This document shows positions 4,629-56,020 of a stretch of DNA of 64,000 nucleotides, piece by piece. Numbering within the stretch: the first letter of the stretch is position 1; the number at the start of each line of letters is the position of its first letter. The notes beneath the pieces are model-generated. The model saw nothing but the letters and a program-made list of their open reading frames with translations. It searched no databases and had not been told where the DNA came from. The stretch lies in the NCBI GenBank assembly GCA_965644295.1, contig CBFFRP010000386.1, positions 1 to 64,000 on the forward strand, in the 5' to 3' direction. The position numbers and the translations under genes are program-made. The DNA is from Paraphysomonas bandaiensis. Its lineage: Eukaryota > Protista > Chrysophyceae.

Positions 4629-7379
4629 TCAGTACTTGACATTGTTCCCCACTTTACCAGTGTAGACATCCTCAATTAGAGACGTATAATTCTATGCCAA
4701 TCATTACTTTCAGACCAAACAAACATAGTGTCAACTTACTTTCAATATATTATTCCGCCGGAGAGACATTTTTGCAGTCAACATCTCGTTTTCCTATGAA
4801 TTAAACTAATTTATACAACCAAAACACTCTTCACTAGGCACCTGTGAAAAAGGTTCAAGTACTGGAACCCAGGTGTTTATTCTCTCATAGTGCTTCACAG
4901 AATCAGAAAACTTAATAATCTATGATTTTCCCATTACCATATAAAGAATATATGGAAATTAGTATCTATACCTCAGAGTTTAGAAGCCTCACTACTGCAT
5001 CATGTCGAAGCAGGTCTTCCTTGGATATTGACGCAGGAATGTCTATATTTTCGGACGAAATCCATTGTTCTAGTTCAGCAAAATCTGGAACAACTAGAGC
5101 AATATTATATTCCCGATTGGCACCAACCACACAACACTGATCGATGTAGTTACTTCGTCCTAGCGCCGCCTCTACTTGCGAGGGCATTACAAATTTTCCA
5201 TTTTCCAGCTTGTACAGCTCATTAACTCGGCCGGTGAGTTTAAGAAATTTCCCATCTACCATGCAGCCGAGGTCTCCACTTCGAAAAAACCTCATTCCTG
5301 TGAGTGTGTACCATGATAATAGAAAGAACAAATGACGTGTAAGTACCATTCTTCGTTATGAATGCCTTGTCGTTGGCTTCCTGGTTGTTGCGGTAACCGG
5401 GAGTAACGTTGTCACCTGCGACACATATTTCGCCTTCGCTTCCATCATTCATCTCTTCCAGTGTTACCGGATCAAGAATAAGCACGGTAACACCAGGAAT
5501 AGGGACTCCAACACACCCAAGTCTCCTATTTTCCCAGCCACCAGGCGGTGAAGTCGTCACCACTGGGGAGGTTTCTGTTAACCCATATCCTTCCATGATC
5601 GGCATACCAATGTCTTCAAAAAATTGTAACACCTAAGAAAAGAATAACTTTCTGCCGAGGTTCCATGATGCTAACCTATGTACCTTGAGGTTGAGAGCAG
5701 ACCCCCCTGATGCCAAATAATCTACCTGCATAGTCCATTAGTAACAGCTGATATCTACAGCACAAGAACATACCCGTCCTCCAATAACCCCTCCGCGTAT
5801 CTTCGACATAACAATGCGGTTGACAGCTTTATATTTTATGTCTAACCACCAACTCACAGGCAGGCCATACTCAAGATTATGGTTTCGCTCCCTGCGAAAT
5901 GTCAACTAACAAATATGCTATGAAAGCCTACCTCGCAATTCGAAAAGCAGTATCGATGAGCTTCTTCTTGGCAGGAGAAAAAGTGGCAAATTTGGCATGT
6001 ACACCATTATAAAGCTACAAACACTATCAGTAAAACGAGGAAGCTCCTAAGCTAGTACCCTGTTTAGAAGAAGAGGAACGGCTGCAAAATGAGTGGGCTT
6101 GACCATCTCGATGCCAGTCAAAATATGGTCACGTGAGGGTACTAGAGCGGTGGCAGAACCATGTGCCATAAGTGAATGTAGGCTGCATGTCTGTACATAT
6201 ATATATAGACCTGAGAAGTGCAGACAAACTCATGGGCACTCTCGACGTACCAGCCCGAAGATGTGAGACCAAGGTATGAAGCAGACGGTGTCATGACGTT
6301 TCATCACTTCCTCCTCACCCCATAGCTCCTGAATCACCGCAACAAGAAATTTTAAAATATGACACAAATAAGTGCACGTGCAGATAACCTTGAGAGACAA
6401 GAGATTGGACACAATGTTCCCGTGTGTGAGGTTAACACCCTGCAGCAGAGCTCAGTAATGTACTGGAAATGCGGAGCAAGCTATAGTACGCACCCACCTT
6501 AGGCCGCCCAGTCGTTCCCGAAGTATACATAACAGTTGTCAGATGTGAGCTAACAAGATGTAAGGTACAATACAATGATAATTGATTTCACACCTTGGAG
6601 GAATGAACGGAGCAGGAATCTCGGAATCTGATATGTTATTCATCAACCTAAAAACAATCGCACATGATGTAATCCATGTAGTTCAACAACATGCAACTAA
6701 CCTCTTATAACTGTGTGCATGACTAGACTCCGCATCAAAACATATGACACTCTTCACTCGCGCGAACTATGACAAAGAGGTTTGACTGCACAGATTCTAA
6801 GTCGTAACCACGCCTTACGTTATTTATGTAGCGACTGGTGATGTCGTATATCCTCTCTGTCGCAACTAGCAGCACCTCAGCTTCAGAATCTTCAATGATA
6901 TATTTCCAATCCTTTTCTTGTTGTGCCTCGTACATGGGAATGACTTGTGCACCCAAACTATTGACAGCATAATATGCCACTGCCCATTCCACCCGATTAT
7001 TACTTATCAGAGCCACCTTGTCGTTCACATTAACGCCATGTAGGGAAAGAACTCCGCGGAACCGATTTACATCCTCTGCAAACTCTCCAAATGTAATATA
7101 CTCAAATCCATCGCTTGTCATAGTGCCCAAAAACTTCTCATTACTATTCATCTCACAGGACTTTATCTGCATCTCCACCTATCTCACATTATAGACGGGA
7201 GAGTTGAGGGGTATAACACTTACAAGATTATTAAAGTCATAGTCTTGTCTTACTCCTTTCAGTGGTACGCTCTGTGTCGATAGAGCGGATGATATGCTCA
7301 TACGAGGCCGACAGCGATGAGCCGCACATGTATATTTCACGCTGCGACAAGCGAGAGACGTGAGACGAGTACCAATCAT
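4629..7379 (-). CDS. Long-chain acyl-CoA synthetase (AMP-binding family), multi-exon, possible mitochondrial presequence
   Basis: YTSGTTGRPK, EGYGLTETSP, GYRNN, FFRSGDLG, GRVNELYKLENGKFV motifs across GT-AG exons; ends ...GNNVKY*. Confidence 0.9.
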
Positions 7380-8457
7380 TTAATAATGAAATGAATGATG
7401 TACTTGGTTTATTCGTTAAGCTTAACTGGGTTTGTTATTATGGTTACTCGACACGTTGATATATCAATAGGAACATACTGCTGTACACTGTGTATGTATA
7501 TATATATAATAGATACTGCTGTACGCGCATGATACCATGCATAGATATTTATCATACGGAACACAGAATACTGCGTAGATGCACTTTATATGGACATTAA
7601 AAACGCCCATTTTCAACTAGAAGTTCATTTTTTTTCTAAAAATAAAGGGTTTCGAGCCTTCTGGGGTGACAGGATGCGTCCAAGTACTCCCTGCTGCATA
7701 TACAGCACACATATACAGCTGTGCTGAGTATGTATGCGTCCAATGTGGACATTGATAAGATACGGTGGCCACGTATCCACTGAGACGATAGGAATTAGAC
7801 AATGTGGTCGTCGCCTGTGTAGTGTAAGAGACATACAGTTTTCTCAGAGTGACTGATATATCATTGTGAACTCGATACTCTCTTCCACTGAGTATAGTTG
7901 ACCGGGATTCACAGGTGTCTGCTGCTTGACGATTGGTGTGATACAATGACAATGTGTGCGATGTAGAGAACGATATACTCTTCTTACTATTGGTCGTCTT
8001 TGTTCATTGCATTGCTACGGAGGCTAACTACGACTATTCTTTAGAGACTTGTATGATACGAAAATCTCGAGAATTCGTAGTCGTTTTCTTCTGCTATATT
8101 ATCATTAGCTTAGAATGGTTCCGTTCTTGAGTTTTTCCACCTTCGTCGAGCTCAGGTCTCTATAATATTGTTACAGTAATTCTTTTTTCGGTCCAGTATA
8201 CATTGCTAAATATTACAAATGCCTTGTTGTTTTTAAACTAGAAGTATAGTTTTGATTGTAGCGTTATTGACTCAATAAAATGTTCTTAACCATATATCAA
8301 CACAAGCACTACAATTATTTAAAGGCACAGTAGTCACTAGTCTTGCACAACCCATTGACACTTGTATATACAAAAAATAATATAAAAAATTAATACTCTA
8401 TCTTCTACCTCTGTCATGATATGTGCAACATACTCAGCAATATCAATCCACATCCTA

Positions 8458-10807
8458 TCACTTGAAATATTTCTGTATTCCATTTTTCTTGCGTTTGCGC
8501 TCATCTAGCACAGCTGATACTGTTTTAGTCTTCGGAATCCTAAATTCGGGCGTGAAACAATACAGTTTAGCAAGTAAATATAATACACACCTCATCGTGC
8601 CGGACATATCGGCACGGGACCGTTGAGTAGATCCCACGCCCAGCTTATAATGGGCGCTGAGCTCTTTCTGTAGTGCTTCTGGTAAGGAATTAAAAACTTC
8701 CATATCTATGTCGTCGATACCTGCGACAAAACCATCATCAGTACTACAATGAAGTTACAACACTTTCTTCTTACCTTCACGCGACATAACAGATATATGC
8801 TCTTTATCTTCGATAGGATCATTGATATCACAATTAGTTTTTTCGTGGTTGCCAATTTCAACTGATATTGGCCGATCAGTGGCAGAGTCACGACTTTCCA
8901 AAGGCTGTAAACCCTTTTCATCATAAGCAGTACTGTCTGTAGATGTCCCATCAAGTGTACTAGAAATATTAGTTGTTGGGGAGGACCTTGTCTGTGGAGA
9001 GTAGTATCGCTGAATTCCTCCACGATGGCGTTTCAATGGTGGAGTTGAGCATGATTTCTCGCTTGTTCTCTCTCTTGAGTCCGTACACATGCTGGAATTT
9101 GAAGATTTGGATGGAGAAACAGATGCCAGAAGTGTCGCAATATTTTGCTTACTGGAAGCCCTTGTTTCGAACGATGACGCATGTACGTATATGGACACAA
9201 TATGCCAGGGATCGCTGCTAGATATAGAAACCTTGTCAGATTTCTCCATCACGGATGTAATCATGCCATAGAAGAGGACAGAAAGCTGCTCAGGAGAATG
9301 AGAACGATGTGGAAAGGGAGCATTTTTGGACAGCGATACAGGCGACGAGGTTGTTACACTTTTACCCGCGTTGTTGAGCTTAACAGAAAAGCTGACACCT
9401 ATATGTTTCGGGAACCTGCCGTGCGTCGCAGCTCCTTCTAGCCTCTCCGTAAGCTCCGTCGACAATGCTGTCAGCCAATTTTTGACCCTTCCATCTTCCA
9501 TTGCCGCTGATGGAAGGCTTGAAGGACCTCGGAAAGTTTTGCCACATGATATAATATTAGGAAATGTGCGTGGTGTAAGGGGCTCGTCAAGGTCTCCTCT
9601 CGCAGCAGAGAGCATCCACACACACTGTGCACGATCGAAGTGAGCCAAAAGTCGATCCATCCCAATTTCAAGTAAGTCGGCAGCGGCACTCACTCCAAAT
9701 TCCTCCTGAAGGGTCTGGCCTAGTTTGCCACCGAAGCCCTTGAGGCGAGAGAGGGGCACTGTCTGCATCAGAGGACTCACTCCGCAATGGGGAACGATTG
9801 TCTGCTTGTTGGGTTTGTTCATTGCGGACACTACCTATATACTAGTTAGGCTGTTTGCAACACCAAAAAGTAGAAGCGATTACCTTGGCAAGCATCTTTG
9901 TATGAGCAATTCCTGCAGAGCAAGTGTATCCGAGACGGTCAAGAACATCCCGGCGTAGCTGACTTACCAGCGCAGATGCGCAAAGGAGGAGTCTGTCGGG
10001 GTGTCTGCCCTCATCCTCATCATCTTCCTCCAGAGACGAACACTGGCGTGTTAGCCACGCCTCACCACCACAATCACCAGCAGCAACTATAACCCCCGGT
10101 GCGGTTGCATGTTGTAATATCTCTGCGCTGATCGAAGGCCAGCGTTCCAGCATTCTTTCCGACTCTTCAGTTACATCGAGGTACACTTCATCTACGCTTG
10201 CACGCTCCACTACGCATTTATACCGCTTGCTCAGTACATCCACTACTCGCTCTCCGGCGTTGCGATATATACCAATGTCTGCTTTACCATGAGCAACAGG
10301 TACTTGTACTAGTTCCAGACTTGGACACGCTTTCTTTGCTTCCACTCCTCGCATTGATCTTGATACTCCTGCAGCTCGAGCTTCATAGCTGACTGCCTCA
10401 ATGGGAAATCGTTAAAGTTGTCTGAAAGAAAACGTACAGCACCTGCAATTAGACTGCCGTTATTATCAACTCGTCTATTATCTTCAGAAGTGAGTGTTTT
10501 CAAATCACCAAAAGGATTGTACTGAACCACTGTAAACATAATGTCAGTTGAGTGCGATATATTGTCTACAGTTAGCTAGATACAATACCTGCAACAGGTT
10601 TGCCACATAGAGTCGGGTCTAAGCCACGCTCAACCTAACAGACATGATTAGATATATAATAAAATCATCCGTAGTGATTGTATGCCTGAACATAGAAACC
10701 TGTGTATGTCTATTACTCGGTATAAGATAACATATACAGTATAACTTACAGTCCATATCAATGTGAGCTATAGCTCGATGATTACTACTCTTCTGCTTCC
10801 GATTCAT
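8458..10807 (-). CDS. POLH: Y-family DNA polymerase eta, multi-exon
   Basis: HIDMDC, VQYNP, YRNAG, ERASVDEVYLD, SAGIAHTKMLAK, NKPNKQT, GFGGKLG; C-terminal UBM-like LPEALQKEL, NLS and PIP-like GIQKYF. Confidence 0.9.
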
Positions 10808-13101: not shown

Positions 13102-13240
13102 CCCTCAACAAAGTCGGACTCGCACCTTTTCGTGAATTTATGGGGAATAAGTACCGGATATATTTTCCGGGAAACAAGTAAGCAGCATATATAGCCAGCA
13201 GGTATTGTTTTACCAAATGCTTGTGTGATACAAGGGACAT
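13102..13240 (+). mobile_element. 5' part of the SINE-like family with a decayed HDV-like ribozyme head
   Basis: ccctcaacaaagtcggactcgcaccttttcgtg is identical to the start of the 54371 copy and begins at the same nucleotide. Confidence 0.8.
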
Positions 13241-13561: not shown

Positions 13562-14528
13562 TTATTAAAAGTCTTATTATTTAGCAATAGGCGTTAAAAA
13601 CCTGCACCAAAATAGTGGCTAGTTGAATGCTAGACATACTAGTTAGACCTCTACCCATAACTAATCAGCACAATTTCTATTATCCTACTATTTAACGCTA
13701 CAGAAGCTGCTTCTTAATGTTGTTTGTGAGTTTCGCCCTGCTCGTGTGGCTTTGGACTCACTGGCGCGCGTTGTCCGGGGGTCTCCCCTTGGGATGAGAT
13801 TCCACCAGGCTCTGAGGTACAGGGTTCTGCATTAAGGTCTTGAGTGTACCGAGCACTAGATGTGTGTGCTGAGAGGTGGATGGTGTGGTGGAATGTGGCG
13901 TTGTCGCCGTGCACTGTGTGGGCGTCAGGCATATGTGGAGGTGCCGGAGACGGCGTCGCCGCTGTCTAGGGCCTGATGGTTTCATGCGGTCCGGTGCTAT
14001 TTTCCTGTGTGTATGAGTGGTGGGGCTCGTGTGTGCAGTGGGCGGTGTTCCAGTCTGTGGATTCCTAGTAATCGTAGCACCCTTGGGCATTTCCACTTCT
14101 GTCTATGTTTTGGACGAGGTCGAGGTAGTAGCCTAGGGGGTCCTTTCTGTAGGGAAACGTATCGTCTACTTCGATCTTGGATCATTAGCTTTGCTGCAGC
14201 GAAAAGCGGTAGAAGTAATCTGATGACCGCTGATTCGATGCTGCGCAGTCCTTGGGGTGTCAGTGACTCGTGGATGTGATCTCCAAATACCGTCTCGAGT
14301 TGAGCAGTTGTGATGGTACCCGTCTAGAATCTCTCCACCTGAGGCACGGAGGGATTCCAGGCCCTGCTGGAGAGCCGCTGTAGTGCAGTGGTGGTCCATT
14401 GGGGTAGTACCGGATTTCTCAGTTCTTCTTGAAGCGCGTTTTTGTGACAACTGTGAAATGCAGACTCCCGAATCTGCGTTTTGGCGTCATTTGTACAGTC
14501 TAGACACATGTGCTTGAGTGAGTCTAGT
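13562..14528 (-). mobile_element. 5'-truncated non-LTR retrotransposon copy with a 14-bp TSD
   Basis: Paralogous to the ORF C-terminus and 3' UTR of 14805-18852 (KHMCLDC...HPKGRPPD); TSD cgacataattagta at 13548-13561 and 14529-14542. Confidence 0.9.
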
Positions 14529-14619
14529 CGACATAATTAGTAGTTGAACTTAGTAAGAGCGCTTAATAAACACTTTAAGCAGAAAATTAATAATTATAAG
14601 AGTTTTCATACATCATTCA

Positions 14620-19263: not shown

Positions 19264-22200
19264 TTACAACAAACACTGCGCTTTTTTATCTTCTTTCCAA
19301 GCCTCTATATTTAAAGCTGGAAACGACATTCGTCTATTCCGTCTTTTCGCAACTTTCTTGTGAAACTTATGGTCCGTTAAATTGGGGCAAGATCTACTCC
19401 TCTTAAACAGCGCACGAGACTTGATTAAGTAGAACTCATCGTAAACCTTCTTATCTTCATCTGAATCATACCACTCATTTCCATCAGTTAAGAACATTAC
19501 TTTCGCTCTACGCTTGTTATTCATTTGTTTCTTCACTACGGCAGCTATAGACATTGTAGTGTCTTGTTCTCCAGCCTTTTTATCCCCCACACTCGAGAGT
19601 CTACTAAAGTTTCTAGACATTCCTCGACTACCCATTGACGACAATTGTTTCCGCATGGGCTTCAGCTTCACATTGTTATTAATTGTTGGAAGACCAGATT
19701 TCATTTCATCCATATCCATTGATTTGCTGTTGCTGACGTTAGATTGGATAATGGCCATCGACGCGGGATCGTTCACCACTGCACGGACAATATTCCACCT
19801 CGAATCTGACCGGGCAATGTTGGAGGCTGTCGAGGCGCTTCGCGACGGCGGGGGGTGACTTGAAGGCCCAGGTTTATCACCATCTAGACGACTTTCACTG
19901 ACAACTGTCTCCAAGGGAACGATCTGTGATGGTCCCCGCGACATTGCAGTGGATGTGGCGGTGGCTTTAGTATCATAATCGTCTTTGCTAACGTTTGAGT
20001 CAAACGACAGAAGCTGTCCATACCGGGCCTTGGATTCACCAGATCCGCCCAGTAGCTGAGATAAACTTCCGCGTCGTTTCATTCTTGGCTCCCCTGATTT
20101 AGTCTCACCACTGTCGAAGAAGTCCTTGGAGTTAATACGGCTTACTAAGTTACCGATAAGATCAGTGGACGATTTCGTTTTTTCTGCCATCATTCTGGCT
20201 CTCGCTTGAACGTATGCTGTACCTAACTTCGAAATAAACTCTGCTCTCTTATCTCGCAAATGCCTTCTTCCAAAATCACTGGTAGCATTGATAGCCATCG
20301 CCAATGCACCCTGAAGGCTAATAGCAACTGCAGGGAAGTGCCGGAGTAACTTTGTTATTTCCAGTTCGCTTAACAAATAGACACTACACGGCATAAACGT
20401 CCGAACAGAAGCCCTGAAGGGCCGTCTTTCCATCATTGCAACGTGGCCAAAAAAATCACCCGCAGTCAATTGGTATATTAAGTCACACATTTCTATCGGA
20501 ACCACCTTGTTACTTGGACTCAAAGACGTTGTGCGTTCAGAAGTACGCATACTTTTCCTAGAAGGGCGTCTTCTGATAATTGAGTCCCTACTCACACGGG
20601 ATTTATAGACATTGGCCCGCCCTGAGACCAGAAAAACAACTTCATGGGCACGTGACCCCTCCACCGCTATGTAGTGCAGTGCGTCGTAGAAGACTGGAGT
20701 CATACGCCTAAAAAGATACAGTATGACACCTTTGCTTTGAATGTATTTAAATATTGCAATCTTGCTCAGGGTATCTGCATGCTGAAAAAATATCATCTTT
20801 CTAGATAGATGCAGCGGTAACCGAGAAAGAATAGCCCTTTCGTCAAAAGCTGATGTTTGTGTGAACATGTACTTAATGTGTTTCACGATGCTATCCGCCA
20901 GAGGAGCTGAGGCATTTTTCTCGATGAGATATTCGGAAACTTCTGCGATTCTTTCATTCATGCGCGTAGAGGTTACATCAAGACTGCCCATAAGACTAGA
21001 TACATTTGCCACGATATAACCAAACACAGTCGCACCGAGAATCATTACAACGATGGTAACAATTCTCCCTTCAGAGTCTACGGGAACTATATCACCGTAT
21101 CCCACAGTTGCAAGGGTTGTGAATGTCCAATATACAGTCGTTACGTACTGTTCTTGGAGAGATGCATCCCTCAGGTTGAGTTTATCATACCATGCATACG
21201 TAGAGAGTGTAGTGCTCAAATACCAGTACAAACAAGAAATGAGATGACCAATGAATAAAACCTCCAAAAGCATTTTAACCAATTCAAAGGTGGCGGGATT
21301 TATTCCCAGTTGATCTTCTAAACGTGCGATATATTTTCTAAGTTTAGCTAATCGTGCTAACTTGAGCAGTCGCATCAACCGAATCACCTTGAGTAGTTTG
21401 AATGAGCTAAATATATCCGTATTACCAGTAGCAAACTTGGACATGATTGTCTCAAATGGCATCACCGAGAAAAAATCTATCCAAAACCAAGTTACGAAGT
21501 AATGTCGATACATTCTCTTCGGAACAACTATATACGCATCTTCATCATCGTCAAAGTAACATGTTCTCATACTCACGAGCATATCGATACCGAAGAATAC
21601 ATCCACCACTATGTCAAATATGCTCAAAGCCCCTGTAGATTTTCGGGCGAAGCCTATCTGGACAGGTATGACAAGTACGCTGAATAGAATAAGGGCCCCA
21701 ATAAACATGTCCCACTTTATCTTATTGTCGCTCTTCGGCAGAATAATATACCGCGCTATGAGGTCCTCATAATGCTCCTCTGCGTGCTCTTGGACCATCT
21801 TCTGTCCCTTTCGCACTTCCCGTACAGTACGGTATACCTCCAGTACCTGATTGGTGGAGTTCATTCGTTTAGCATATAGCTTGCTAGAGCTATCCTCCTG
21901 TTGCATAGCTTGCAGCTTCCCATCCACAACCAGAGTTTCCTTTACGTATATTCGGTGACCTTCCCTCTTGTGTGCCTGACTCTGACTGGCCTCGACAAAA
22001 TTCTCGTACCTCTGCTGCAGCTCCGCTGTCACCCTGTCTCCAGTAACAGGGTACGTTCCTATTGCCTCATCCAACACTCCTGTTGGAATTGCGATCACAT
22101 TGCAATTGCACATGGCACGATGGGACACCATCCGAATAGTTCGTTTGTAGTACTCAAAGTCACCAAAGTATCCTCCCTCAGAGCTGTACCCAGTGACAGC

Positions 22201-23761
22201 GTCAACTACGCCATCGAGCTCAGTGTATCCCACAGTTGTGAACTGCACCAATCCACGCATGACAAACATAATCTCGTCCGGCACATCACCCTTTTCTGCG
22301 ATAAGAGTTCCTGGTAGCGCCTGGAACGGCTTGCTATGTATAACAAGCTTTACAATGAAGTTCTCGTCACACTCCTTGAACAGATGAATGCGGTGGACTT
22401 CTGTGGAATAAATTGATAGAACAAGTTTATTAAGAAGATTCGGCGGCAGGTCGGTGAAAATTCCCGTCTCACCAAATGAAGACTTGCGACCAAGGAAATA
22501 CCCATACGCATCTCTGGCAGCAATCTTGAGTTTGGTGGGAAGGAGTTTCTCGTTCAGATATGCCTTTAGCTCATCCATCTTTTCCTTGAATGCTCTAGCC
22601 TGGGGGTTACGGCTTTCTATCAGTCGCGTCACCTGAGCAATCACAGCACCGAACAAGACTGCTCCAACAAGTTCAGTGCAGATACAGTATATACGCTCCG
22701 ATGAGTTCACCCCACTTATGTCTCCATAGCCTATCGAGAGCATTGTACTGATCGTCCAATAGAAAGAAGCGATATATCGAGTGCCCAGACTTGATGTCTC
22801 ATAACCGAAACGAGTTGTCCAAGTATTCCCATCCGGGTTCGGCCGATCATTGCTGTAGTCGGCGGGTACGTCATCACGTACATCGTCAGTGGTGAGGAAA
22901 TGCCAAAAGCATGACACAATATGTGCTACGAAGCATATCTCCAGCACCAGTTTCTGTACCCCCAAGAGAGCAGGATTGATGTTATATGAGTCTAAAAGTT
23001 TGCCAAACTTGCTGAGTTTCAAAACACGGAGGAGCTTAAGCATTCTAGTGAGACGGAGTATCTTGATCAGTCGCAGCGATTCCAACTGACTCCCACCCCC
23101 AGTGTACTTGTGGACGATAGAATCGAACGGCACGGTCGAGAAAAGGTCAATCCAAAACCACACCTTTAAATAATTCGAAGCAATTTTGCTACGACTAGTT
23201 ACTACTAATTCAGTTGTCGGATCTACAAATGAAGTGTTGAAGCTAAATAGTATATCCAATCCGAAAAGACTGTCCACCATTAGGTCAAACACAGATTCGC
23301 CATAACTTGGTGTAACTTGAAATCCTATTCGAAATGGAATGATGATAATAGAGTACAATATTAGCAAGCCAATAAAACAGTCCCACAGCATTTTCCAGAC
23401 ACCTTCGGGGTCAAAGAGGCTCATTTGCTCAAGTAGCTATCAAACAAAAACATTAGCAAAAAGACACACACACACGCATTAGTTATACCTCTTTAGAATG
23501 TTCTGCATATATTTTATCAGAACTAACAGATCCAGGACCTAAATCTCTTTTGAACTTTGTCTTTTTTGTGTTTCTAACAAGCTTTTCTCTCTGTATAATT
23601 GAGGCCGACTTAACGCCTTCCCAAAAACTAGTGTATGTGTCGATCTCAGCCAGCATCATCTCCCGCTCCTTCTGTTGCTCCAGTGCATCAGCAACAACCT
23701 TATCATTCGACTGATTCTTTTTTATCGTCTTCTTTGATACAGTTGCTGCCTTTGCAATCAT
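19264..23761 (-). CDS. Voltage-gated K+ channel of the CNBD superfamily with two tandem 6TM-CNBD repeats
   Basis: Two S4 helices (RLIKILRLTRMLKLLR; KLLKVIRLMRLLKLAR), two pores (SIGYGD, TVGYGD), two C-linker/CNBD regions; one intron near 23437-23486. Confidence 0.9.
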
Positions 23762-53807: not shown

Positions 53808-54370
53808 TGAACGTGTGTCACTGTCGCAGCTGTGAGTTCCAGTATTGGTTGTACTGAAATATATATTTATATACACAAATTCTAACAAATATACTAAATA
53901 CATATGTAAGCTTGGAATAACTTGTAATGGCTTGACTCTACTGAACATAAACTTCCGGACCGACAGTGAAAAAATGATAGTACGCAGTTTTAAGTTTGAA
54001 GTAGGTTAATAAATACTACTTTGCAGTAGTTGTGCAGTATTTCTAATAGACACTCTTGTTAAGTTTTGATTGTTTTGTACGCAATTAAAGCTCCATTGCA
54101 AGGTATTTAAATTATGGCCGTTACTTGAATGTAATACAGTAGCTAAAAAAGTAGTACATGAACTCATGATAAGATATGAATTATGTTAGTAAAACTGAAA
54201 TATATTGACTATATAACGTTGTCACTACCTAATATCCTTTGATATTGGTTGGTAATATATATAGATGACATAGATTTAGCGAATTACAACATTACAACAA
54301 ATTGATTATTGAGTACGCCAAGGTCACCAAGAGAGCTCGACTTAGATATTAATATATTATGAGGACTTCG

Positions 54371-54457
54371 CCCTCAACAAAGTCGGACTCGCACCTTTTC
54401 GTGGTGTTCTGGGGGATAAGTACCGGAGATATTTCTCCGGGAAACTAACGTGAGCCG
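54371..54457 (+). ncRNA. Candidate HDV-like (L1Tc/ingi Pr77-type) self-cleaving ribozyme
   Basis: P1 CCCTCAAC/GTTCTGGG (imperfect), P2 CTCGC/GTGAG, P3 ACC-TTTTCGT-GGT, AGTA, P4 CCGGAGA-TATT-TCTCCGG, GAAACTAA. Confidence 0.65.
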
Positions 54458-55543
54458 CATATTATATAGTCAGCAGATATATTGTTCTGCCCACTCATAG
54501 CCAAATGCTTGTGTGGTACAAGGGACACTAACAAGTGTCACTTGTGTAGACGTCTTTGGGCCCTGACGAATAAACAGGCATCCGGGAATGGGCCCACCAG
54601 AAGGGTAACCGGGGTATTAGGCTGCCTGCTGAAGTTAAGCATCCGGGATGTTCACCTTAAGAACTCAAAACACCTGAAGTCAGCAGATGTCAGGTATATC
54701 AACATTCTGCTTGCTCCCTGCGTTTGCTTTGAGTGATTGATGCTGAGTATGAGTTCACATTATTCGGTATCTGTGTGGCCAATGACCGAGGTAATGCGTC
54801 AAACTTTCCTCATGGATGCATGGCAATGGCAATGATGTGATTAGACCTGTCATGTCTTCTCACACGTCTACTGCCTAGTCTTGGTTTCTCCTGACCCAGG
54901 TCATTGAGATTATATCAAGGCTCTGGCACTGTTCTCCAAGCAGTGTCAGGTACATTTGTGGTGCTTTAAATTATGTTATTCTTGCTTAGTAGGTTTTCAT
55001 CCGAGCGGGGAAGGTGCACGGTTTCCTACTAGTGTAAGTCACTCGGGAGAAGAGTGCAAGGTGGATGCATGTGCTGGATGAGTGCACACAATGGAGGGAA
55101 GATATTGGAGTCAGCTTGAATTTGTAACAGATTTTGGTAGATGTCTGTTTCATGCGTCAGTGTGCAAAATTGCACCAGTGAGACCGCTTCGTGACCGTGG
55201 GAGGACCCGGCGCTATAGAGCTACTTTATTCTCCCTTCCAGACTACCTGCTGCTGTGAACACCACCTTGAAGAGGGCCGCATATACAGGAGACATATGCC
55301 GAAGACACCGACCGCAAGTTGTTTGTGTTAGGACAAGTAGATTGGGCAGGAGCGTATGATCCGGCTTAAACACGCAACTCGTCGTATGCCCATGTAGCTA
55401 ACTAAACCGTGTTGTATAGTTGAGCTTTTGTCGGTGCATGCAATAGTAACTAGATGAGAGTCATGTTATGCATAGTGTCGCGCGAGTTGTTAGGTTGGTC
55501 GCGGCAACGCACAAGCTTGCGCTTCTTAATAATCAGATTTTCC
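54371..55543 (+). mobile_element. Composite non-autonomous retroelement with a 15-bp TSD: ribozyme-like head, SINE body, cargo, LINE-like tail
   Basis: TSD attatgaggacttcg at 54356-54370 and 55544-55558; tail gcggcaacgcacaagc...aataatcag. Confidence 0.85.
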
Positions 55544-56020
55544 ATTATGAGGACTTCGTTTTTGAGCAAAAAAATGTACTAAGTAGCATGAATATCGCAC
55601 GCCTCTATTGATAGATTCGAGAACTAGAGCATTCTGTCATATCCAGCTGTCTAGTCTTGTTAACATAATGGAGTCGGCTTAAACTATAGTAGCCGATTTT
55701 GGTAGACGTTTGCAAATGTTAAATGTGAGACCGCTACGTGACCTGGGAGAACACGGTGTACAGTAGGTCTAACGTACTCACCTGCTGTGATCACCACCTC
55801 TTGAAAGGCCCTCCTATATAGATTTGCCGCATATATACAGGACAGATAATATGCTGAAAACACGCACCACAGGTTGTGTGTGCTAGGACAAGCACGTTGA
55901 TCTGGCAGCATCAGGCAACTCGTCGTATGCAAGCATGTAGATAATTTAATCGTGTTGCATAGTTCAGCATGCAATGGTAACTAGATGGAAGTCATGCTAT
56001 GCTTAGTGTCACGCAAGCGG
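54970..56020 (+). pseudogene. Two decayed tyrosine-recombinase-like fragments (about 54970-55490 and 55690-56020)
   Basis: VILA**VFIRAGK (box I-like), TDFGR, PVRPLRD, AVNTTLKRAA, HRL..GQA..DLAASG (box II-like); heavily frameshifted. Confidence 0.45.

Follow-up and report, generated by a model that had tools for sequence, protein, structure and literature searches.

The window analysed here is a 64,000-nucleotide stretch of Paraphysomonas bandaiensis DNA, in which a non-coding retroposon lies between two 15-bp copies of a target-site duplication (TSD). The element begins with a candidate HDV-like ribozyme and ends in a tail derived from a LINE. A second, decayed copy of its head and a truncated copy of the presumed partner LINE are located elsewhere in the window. 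These features are as follows.

54371-55543, plus strand: the whole non-autonomous retroposon, 1173 bp, longest ORF 88 aa in an ORF scan
54356-54370, plus strand: left 15-bp TSD copy, whose last base directly precedes C1 of the element
54371-54456, plus strand: candidate HDV-like ribozyme head (Pr77/L1TcRz class), predicted cut 5' of C54371
55478-55543, plus strand: LINE-derived 3' tail, GCGGCAACGCACAAGC ... AATAATCAGATTTTC
55544-55558, plus strand: right TSD copy, the 15-mer ATTATGAGGACTTCG, identical to the left copy
13102-13239, plus strand: second head copy with the start of the body, decayed and truncated, same first base, 84.5% identity
14802-18856, minus strand: presumed partner LINE copy, 5'-truncated, 99.9% identical to LINE positions 5314-9368, with the RT domain

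The retroposon and its partner LINE

The initial annotation placed a 15-bp TSD before the first base of the element, and this TSD is present at both ends. A search of the 62.5-Mb assembly with the first 160 nt as query gave 22 copies that are 100% identical, together with 2226 first-look candidates; nucleotides 1-53 are identical to those of the window copy in 161 genomic copies. Full-length copies occur at about 20 loci with 95-98% identity, and the differences are mostly short tandem indels. Short tandem duplications with a unit of about 25-30 nt (CATCCGGGA...GGGCCCACC) distinguish the copies (window 54587-54640 and the same region in L001-L030).

The initial annotation named scattered 5' ends as evidence against its reading; all 27 loci checked start at the same base, the C of CCCTCAAC, with upstream flanks that are unrelated right up to this C. 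Of 22 full-length copies, 19 have a TSD of 11-18 bp that runs directly into C1, no base being added at the 5' junction. At the other end the copies also coincide (...AATAATCAGATTTTCA) and are followed by 0-6 extra bases and then the TSD. A fixed end point combined with TSDs that abut C1 is the hallmark left by target-primed reverse transcription when the template RNA always has the same 5' end. As the initial annotation claimed, the copy at 13102 shares this first nucleotide, but it is decayed: the 3' strand of P3 is gone, and a covariance model of the class (described below) gives it 16.4 bits (13106-13185).

Like a classical SINE, the element is short, abundant and non-coding and has the 3' tail of a partner LINE and variable TSDs. 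Unlike one, it has a head that is not derived from tRNA, 7SL or 5S RNA, and at 1.17 kb it is longer. The label SINE-like used in the initial annotation therefore suits a non-coding, LINE-dependent element, but not its length or its lack of a pol III-type head. A pol III SINE head was considered and rejected given TTTT at +26-29, where pol III would terminate, the absence of A and B boxes, and the lack of a small-RNA match; no match to tRNA, 5S or 7SL was found in Rfam at E<=10 within 54250-54750. Transcription by pol III is thus unlikely, as judged from the T4 run and the absent tRNA/5S/7SL match. The variable TSDs of 11-18 bp together with the LINE-type tail contradict classification as an LTR element, a DNA transposon or a Helitron.

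Several other arrangements of the same sequences occur in the genome. A short form of about 500 bp joins the first ~300 nt of the element straight to ~170 nt of LINE 3' UTR (joining at window 54667; L050:1067-1555), and members of this type indicate that a module made up of the head plus ~300 nt is reused with other bodies and tails. At L002:1660-1775 two heads are arranged head-to-head, 7 nt apart; one is of the master type, and the other is diverged, with P4 deleted and P2 reading CCCAC instead of CUCGC. Within the element of the window, 55276-55486 (~210 nt) is about 70% similar to 55826-56017, just past the right TSD.

The full-length LINE is about 9.4 kb and has a single 3021-aa ORF with SET, APE and RT domains (Pfam: SET 1.1e-8, Exo_endo_phos 1.8e-9, RVT_1 8e-15), the SET domain lying upstream of APE and RT (L051:1-1236(-) plus L043:2174-10000(-)). 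To our knowledge, no LINE with a SET domain of the histone-methyltransferase type is known. By eye, the tail of the element and the LINE 3' UTR have in common a motif of ~16 nt and the terminal ~18 nt, and BLAST aligns a single 16-nt stretch with an E value of 0.75. The start of full-length LINE copies, AAATTCTCTGCCC..., lies about 60 nt ahead of the ORF and is unrelated to the head; no head was found on the partner LINE, the covariance model having no match in L043 or L051. Since the element is non-coding and has a LINE-type tail, and since the LINE start is unrelated, the element appears to be a non-autonomous passenger of the LINE that carries a head of its own. The likeness to RIME and NARTc suggested in the initial annotation stands insofar as the head sits on a non-coding derivative, but it does not extend to the partner: the head is common to LINE and derivative in L1Tc/NARTc and ingi/RIME, whereas the SET-APE-RT LINE here lacks it.

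A second LINE subfamily, with ~72% protein identity to the first and the same type of 3' tail (...AAAGACATTCAAT), is found at window 13563-14529(-) and in G000:C143 (L044+L052); its fragment in the window directly adjoins the copy of the first LINE. Directly upstream of the LINE insertion is an intron-less ORF of 1386 aa (window 19264-23424(-)) for a cyclic-nucleotide-binding ion channel with two Ion_trans regions.

Fold of the head and its likeness to L1TcRz

The segments P1-P2-P3-L3-P3'-P1'-(P1.1)-P4-J4/2-P2' are all found in this order at 54371-54456, which is the layout of a nested double pseudoknot.

54371-54378, plus strand: P1 5' strand CCCUCAAC, pairs with 54406-54415, identical in every subfamily seen
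54386-54392, plus strand: P2 5' strand (G16, C18-C22), pairs with 54450-54456
54393-54405, plus strand: P3 (ACC/GGU) with the 7-nt L3 UUUUCGU; P3 and the CGU of L3 occur in 13/13 environmental relatives, where the search pattern fixes them
54406-54415, plus strand: P1 3' strand GUUCUGGGGG, 2-nt bulge at 54409-54410, where the covariance model places an insertion
54416-54422, plus strand: J1/4, A and U followed by AAGUA (class motif NAGUAC); A46 is a candidate P1.1 partner of U26
54423-54440, plus strand: P4 hairpin, perfect 7 bp with a UAUU loop, strands 54423-54429 and 54434-54440
54441-54449, plus strand: J4/2 GAAACUAAC with candidate catalytic C54445; matches GAARCUAA, itself part of the search pattern

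The head sequence and the segment coordinates given in the initial annotation are correct for P2 (54388-54392/54450-54454), for P3 with its 7-nt loop, for P4 and for CUAA with C54445. P2 is short, with 4-5 bp before a mismatch, its pairs being C22-G80, G21.U81, C20-G82, U19-A83 and C18-G84, followed by the A17.C85 mismatch and G16-C86. For P1.1 only a single pair can be proposed, and A46 would be the partner of U26 in it. The motif CGTG occurs at +30-33 of the head, after CACC-N4.

The register of P1 is where the initial annotation needs correcting. It had paired 54371-54378 with 54406-54413 and accepted two mismatches (U4.U40 and C5.C39), an arrangement of 3+3 bp with a nested energy of -18.7 kcal/mol. 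If C39 and U40 are bulged instead, all eight bases of the 5' strand are paired (C1-G45, C2-G44, C3-G43, U4.G42, C5-G41, A6-U38, A7-U37 and C8-G36) and the energy is -20.0 kcal/mol; a third register, of 6 bp with 4 unpaired nucleotides, gives -20.4 kcal/mol. The bulged helix keeps both spacings of the class, with P1' right after P3' and exactly 2 nt from the end of P1' to AAGUAC, and the covariance-model alignment, to which C1 adds a further pair, puts an insertion in the 3' strand and leaves zero non-standard pairs in P1. P1 thus reads better as a helix of 8 bp from which C54409 and U54410 are bulged than in the two-mismatch register. P1 is irregular whichever register is taken, and compared with the class it has one additional nucleotide in the 5' strand and three in the 3' strand; no relative is alike, all 13 having a plain 7-bp P1. 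Mismatches in P1 are uncommon in HDV-like ribozymes and single ones have been linked to loss of activity in vitro, although in R2 ribozymes the top of P1 may contain one or two mismatches, and a P1 of no more than 4 bp is tolerated as well (PMC3774820). Based on these facts, cleavage with an irregular P1 is plausible, though not assured.

The closest comparison is with L1TcRz, an experimentally active ribozyme (PMC3185411). The first 77 nt of L1Tc were rebuilt from published primers and positions (PMC3185411, PMC4748587) and compared with the head by eye. The rebuilt sequence has P1 as CCCUGGC/GCCAGGG, then ACC-AUUGCGU-GGU, 2 nt and UAGUAC, the P4 hairpin, GGAAGCUAA, 2 nt and the P2 3' strand (PMC3185411, PMC4748587), and its P1.1 is a single pair (PMC3185411). 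The head in the window has ACC-UUUUCGU-GGU, AAGUAC, GGAAACUAA, 2 nt and the P2 3' strand, so that more than layout is common to the two. The L1Tc/ingi Pr77 layout recognised in the initial annotation (ACC-7nt-GGT, AGUAC, GAA(A/G)CUAA, 2 nt before P2') is therefore accompanied by likeness in sequence. C54445 lies within GAAACUAA, in the same sequence position as the C of GAAGCUAA in the proven L1TcRz. Because L1Tc was found independently of the search pattern that fixes P3, the CGU of L3 and GAARCUAA in the environmental relatives, its agreement in these motifs is independent support. Each head takes up the opening ~77-86 nt of its non-LTR retroelement, the cut, which is a prediction for the window element, falls 5' of a +1 C (CCCU...), and both have P3 as ACC/GGU, a 7-nt L3 ending in CGU, 2 nt and then NAGUAC, GAA(A/G)CUAA, and 2 nt before P2'; in both cases the head is also found on non-coding derivatives. 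The differences are a plain 7-bp P1 in L1Tc compared with strands of 8 nt and 10 nt and a 2-nt bulge here, and CGTG at +25-28 in L1Tc compared with +30-33 here. The host of L1Tc is a trypanosomatid, whereas the element here, with its putative promoter and predicted cleavage, is in an apparently marine protist.

HDV-like ribozymes at the 5' ends of retrotransposons are established for R2, L1Tc and others, and non-coding carriers of such ribozymes are known in trypanosomatids (NARTc, RIME and SIDER). Other ribozyme-bearing non-autonomous retroelements are the Schistosoma Sm-alpha SINE, which has a hammerhead, and the retrozymes of plants and animals. Twister-variant ribozymes are described for non-LTR elements of S. 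mansoni (PMC8501958). Like the element here, these elements carry a small self-cleaving RNA in a non-coding or LINE-type element where it is thought to process the transcript, but the ribozymes belong to other classes and retrozymes have a circular-RNA life cycle. Retrotransposons with HDV-like ribozymes include R2, R4, Dong and baggins (PMC3774820). In the R2 type a double pseudoknot at the 5' end likewise frees the element RNA from a co-transcript, P1 sets the cut, and P4 and J1/2 are variable; R2 differs in being site-specific in 28S rDNA and in often having 28S sequence in P1, and the ribozymes of this group have other core sequences and are carried by autonomous elements.

Environmental relatives and variation within the genome

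Relatives of the head were sought in metagenomes with a pattern in which CACC-N4-CGTGGTG ... AGTAC ... GAARCTAA was fixed while P1, P2 and P4 were left free. The scan yielded 23 loci, which represent at least six unrelated families after removal of duplicates and of L055 and L060. Examples of these families are listed below.

L058:4730-4813
L061:346-425
L057:1329-1421
L065:292-376
L068:127-202
L077:1776-1856

Each family has a perfect or near-perfect 7-bp P1 straight after GGU, a P2 of 6-9 bp and a P4 hairpin of its own, and the helix sequences differ from family to family. The core motifs and spacings are identical to those of the head in the window, and the regular 7-bp P1 found in all families is what sets them apart from it. 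Two spacings deserve mention: the distance from the end of P1' to NAGUAC is exactly 2 nt in 13/13 relatives, a spacing that the pattern left free while fixing AGUAC, and P2 pairing begins exactly 2 nt past CUAA in every relative. No RT or other informative ORF was found downstream of the environmental relatives. In one group (L056:4900-5022, L061, L062, L070, L072, L073, L075 and L076) about 30 nt upstream of the predicted cut are conserved between contigs, suggesting that the ribozyme there is inside a larger conserved unit rather than at the 5' end of a repeat. In another (L057, L059, L063, L064, L067 and L074) the predicted cut is preceded, at a distance of a few bases, by an A-rich run, aaaaaaccaaaaaaaaa, which would fit head-to-tail elements or insertion beside poly(A) tails.

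Thirteen environmental sequences were aligned on the double pseudoknot. The 5' strand of P1 was located in the relatives by best complementarity within 40 nt and fell in the same alignment columns in every row; L055, whose best P1 partner pairs at 5/7 positions and which starts only ~40 nt into its contig, and L060, in which the 3' strand of P1 is decayed, were left out. The alignment has 95.2% standard pairs, compared with 40-52% when the partners are slid, and both sides have changed in 16/21 pairs; the covariation score is 0.75 compared with 0.08-0.17 in the slid controls. None of 500 shuffles reached the alignment on four of the five measures, and 7/500 reached it on the count of further pair types. 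A covariance model trained on these 13 rows only, with no sequence from the genome of the window, finds the head at 54372-54457 over the full model length with 39.9 bits and, for a search of the window, an E value of 5.5e-8, in agreement with the initial annotation. Across the examined loci the model found 44 heads, 43 of them besides the window copy. In Rfam, no HDV-type match to the head was found, either in the whole window at the gathering threshold or in 54250-54750 at E<=10, a silence that carries little weight since Rfam also misses the canonical environmental relatives. Given one proven member of the class and strong covariation in others, the head is very probably homologous to the HDV-like ribozyme class of L1TcRz, as judged from sequence comparison.

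Within the genome the core motif has 397 exact matches compared with 0 for a reversed-pattern control. When a different base was forced after GGUG, only seven variants were recovered, all of them products of single-base decay, which indicates a single head lineage with one P1 in this genome; the genome pattern search found no second head family with a different, regular P1. P1 is invariant in at least 161 copies, and the only change in P2 is an improving one. The P4 hairpin, by contrast with the constant nt 1-53, occurs in several forms, of which subtypes b and c were read from the pattern outputs.

P4 subtype a (the window copy): pair 55:68 is G-C
P4 subtype b, 168 exact copies: pair 55:68 is G.U, with an extra closing G-C pair through a substitution and an insertion
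P4 subtype c, 29 copies: pair 55:68 is G.U
Diverged copy at L052:5248-5332: pair 55:68 is A-U, and A17G closes the P2 mismatch

The path from G-C through G.U to A-U at 55:68 points to selection on the hairpin of the sense-strand RNA. The covariation of P1, P2 and P4 proposed as a check in the initial annotation is thus seen in all three helices among the 13 environmental relatives, but within the family it is P4 alone that varies in a compensatory manner, P1 and most of P2 being invariant. Decayed copies were considered as a further source of covariation and set aside, their changes being neutral, CpG-type decay.

Maintenance of the 5' end

With moderate confidence, self-cleavage of the head is favoured over the alternatives as the way in which the family maintains its 5' end. 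The predicted cut coincides with the first base of the element, no extra base is present at the junction, and the subfamilies have retained both the motifs of the catalytic core and the pairing of P4. In the mechanism proposed, copies of the element would be transcribed within longer host or read-through RNAs, and the head would fold into the nested double pseudoknot (P1, P2, P3/L3 and P4) with C54445 of J4/2 as the general acid. The cut directly 5' of C54371 would free an RNA that begins with the whole ribozyme. The machinery of the SET-APE-RT LINE would then recognise the LINE-type 3' tail and insert a copy by target-primed reverse transcription, and because the freed RNA is what would be reverse transcribed, each daughter would inherit the ribozyme and an identical 5' end. 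Three parts of this mechanism are inferences: that the RNA is indeed cleaved, that the bulged 8-bp P1 is tolerated, and that the RNA comes from read-through transcription.

RNA data consist of assembled contigs from 24 runs, in which the starts and ends of RNAs are not readable and the contigs break at repeat boundaries. The element is found in marine metatranscriptome assemblies (polyA and cDNA) of two studies, where contigs of 836 and 922 nt cover the body, and the unique flanks of the window locus are silent in these assemblies. A few contigs from RNA libraries (X3, X9 and X1) carry foreign sequence upstream of the head; the X3 contig has 154 nt of such flank at a depth of 19, compared with ~100 for the body. 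Such junction-crossing contigs may come from read-through RNA that escaped cleavage, from copies that are dead, or from carried-over DNA.

The main rival to self-cleavage, itself unlikely, is that the head serves as a promoter in the manner of Pr77, whether or not some cleavage remains. The head would then be an HDV-like descendant that now acts mainly or only as an internal pol II promoter, with transcription starting precisely at C54371, CGTG at +30-33 as downstream element, and a ribozyme that is weak or dead from its disrupted P1. In T. cruzi, the Pr77 of L1Tc drives focused pol II transcription, for which its CGTG at +25-28 is essential (PMC4748587). The promoter role stands as the main rival because of the CGTG in the head and because P1 is both irregular and invariant, as expected if it is the DNA sequence and not the pairing that is constrained. 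Such a promoter would equally explain the sharp 5' end and would keep ~1000 dispersed copies transcribable, and RNA contigs that cross the 5' junction do exist. Against this, a DNA promoter needs no pairing in P4, where pairing has been kept through compensatory changes with G.U intermediates, and all catalytic-core motifs are intact. In 19/22 copies there is no extra 5' base between TSD and C1, such as a G derived from a cap, and promoter activity of Pr77 is known in trypanosomatids only. The two functions are also not exclusive, both being present in L1Tc.

Less probable still is that the head is a conserved structured module of the 5' RNA with another role (LINE-protein binding, RNA stability or packaging) and no present catalysis, the uniform 5' end arising because a defined master transcript is reverse transcribed in full. 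The maintained P4 hairpin would suit such a module, as would the presence of the head plus ~300 nt in several families that otherwise have bodies and tails of their own (for example the short form with its junction at 54667, and the C80 copy). A structured module leaves unexplained, however, why the core motifs (L3 CGU, NAGUAC and GAAACUAA with its C) are kept and why the element starts at the exact predicted cut site, and since the partner LINE lacks the module, it is not required for recognition by the LINE protein. That the 5' end of a repeat can be drawn as an HDV-like fold by chance is highly improbable: short helices (3-bp P3, 5-bp P2) are easily found by eye and Rfam has no match, but the independent covariance model matches at full length with the E value given above, motifs of 7-9 nt in the right order and spacing are common to L1TcRz and six covarying environmental families, and the reversed-pattern control gave no match against 397.

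New here are a host outside the trypanosomatids, a head uncoupled from its LINE, a bulged P1, and environmental relatives that define a compact core motif. A broader view can be offered tentatively, namely that the Pr77/L1TcRz class, described to date from trypanosomatids only, is widespread in eukaryotes and that it has been captured here as a head by SINE-like retroposons that have no promoter and whose LINE has no head, with host read-through and self-cleavage replacing the pol III promoter and with an unprecedented bulged 8-bp P1. The core CACC-N4-CGUGGU ... NAGUAC ... GAARCUAA is a simple and specific probe with which the class can be found where Rfam models fail, in eukaryotic as well as environmental data. 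Without cleavage, the head would be the fossil of a ribozyme that has been retained for some other function, which could be that of a promoter, as for Pr77. If the bulged P1 is functional, it would widen the design rules for HDV-like motif searches. If the head does cleave, the L1Tc-type ribozyme would be extended beyond the kinetoplastids, and there would be a second route to a SINE, in which a self-trimming RNA head takes the place of the pol III promoter and is combined with a borrowed LINE tail.
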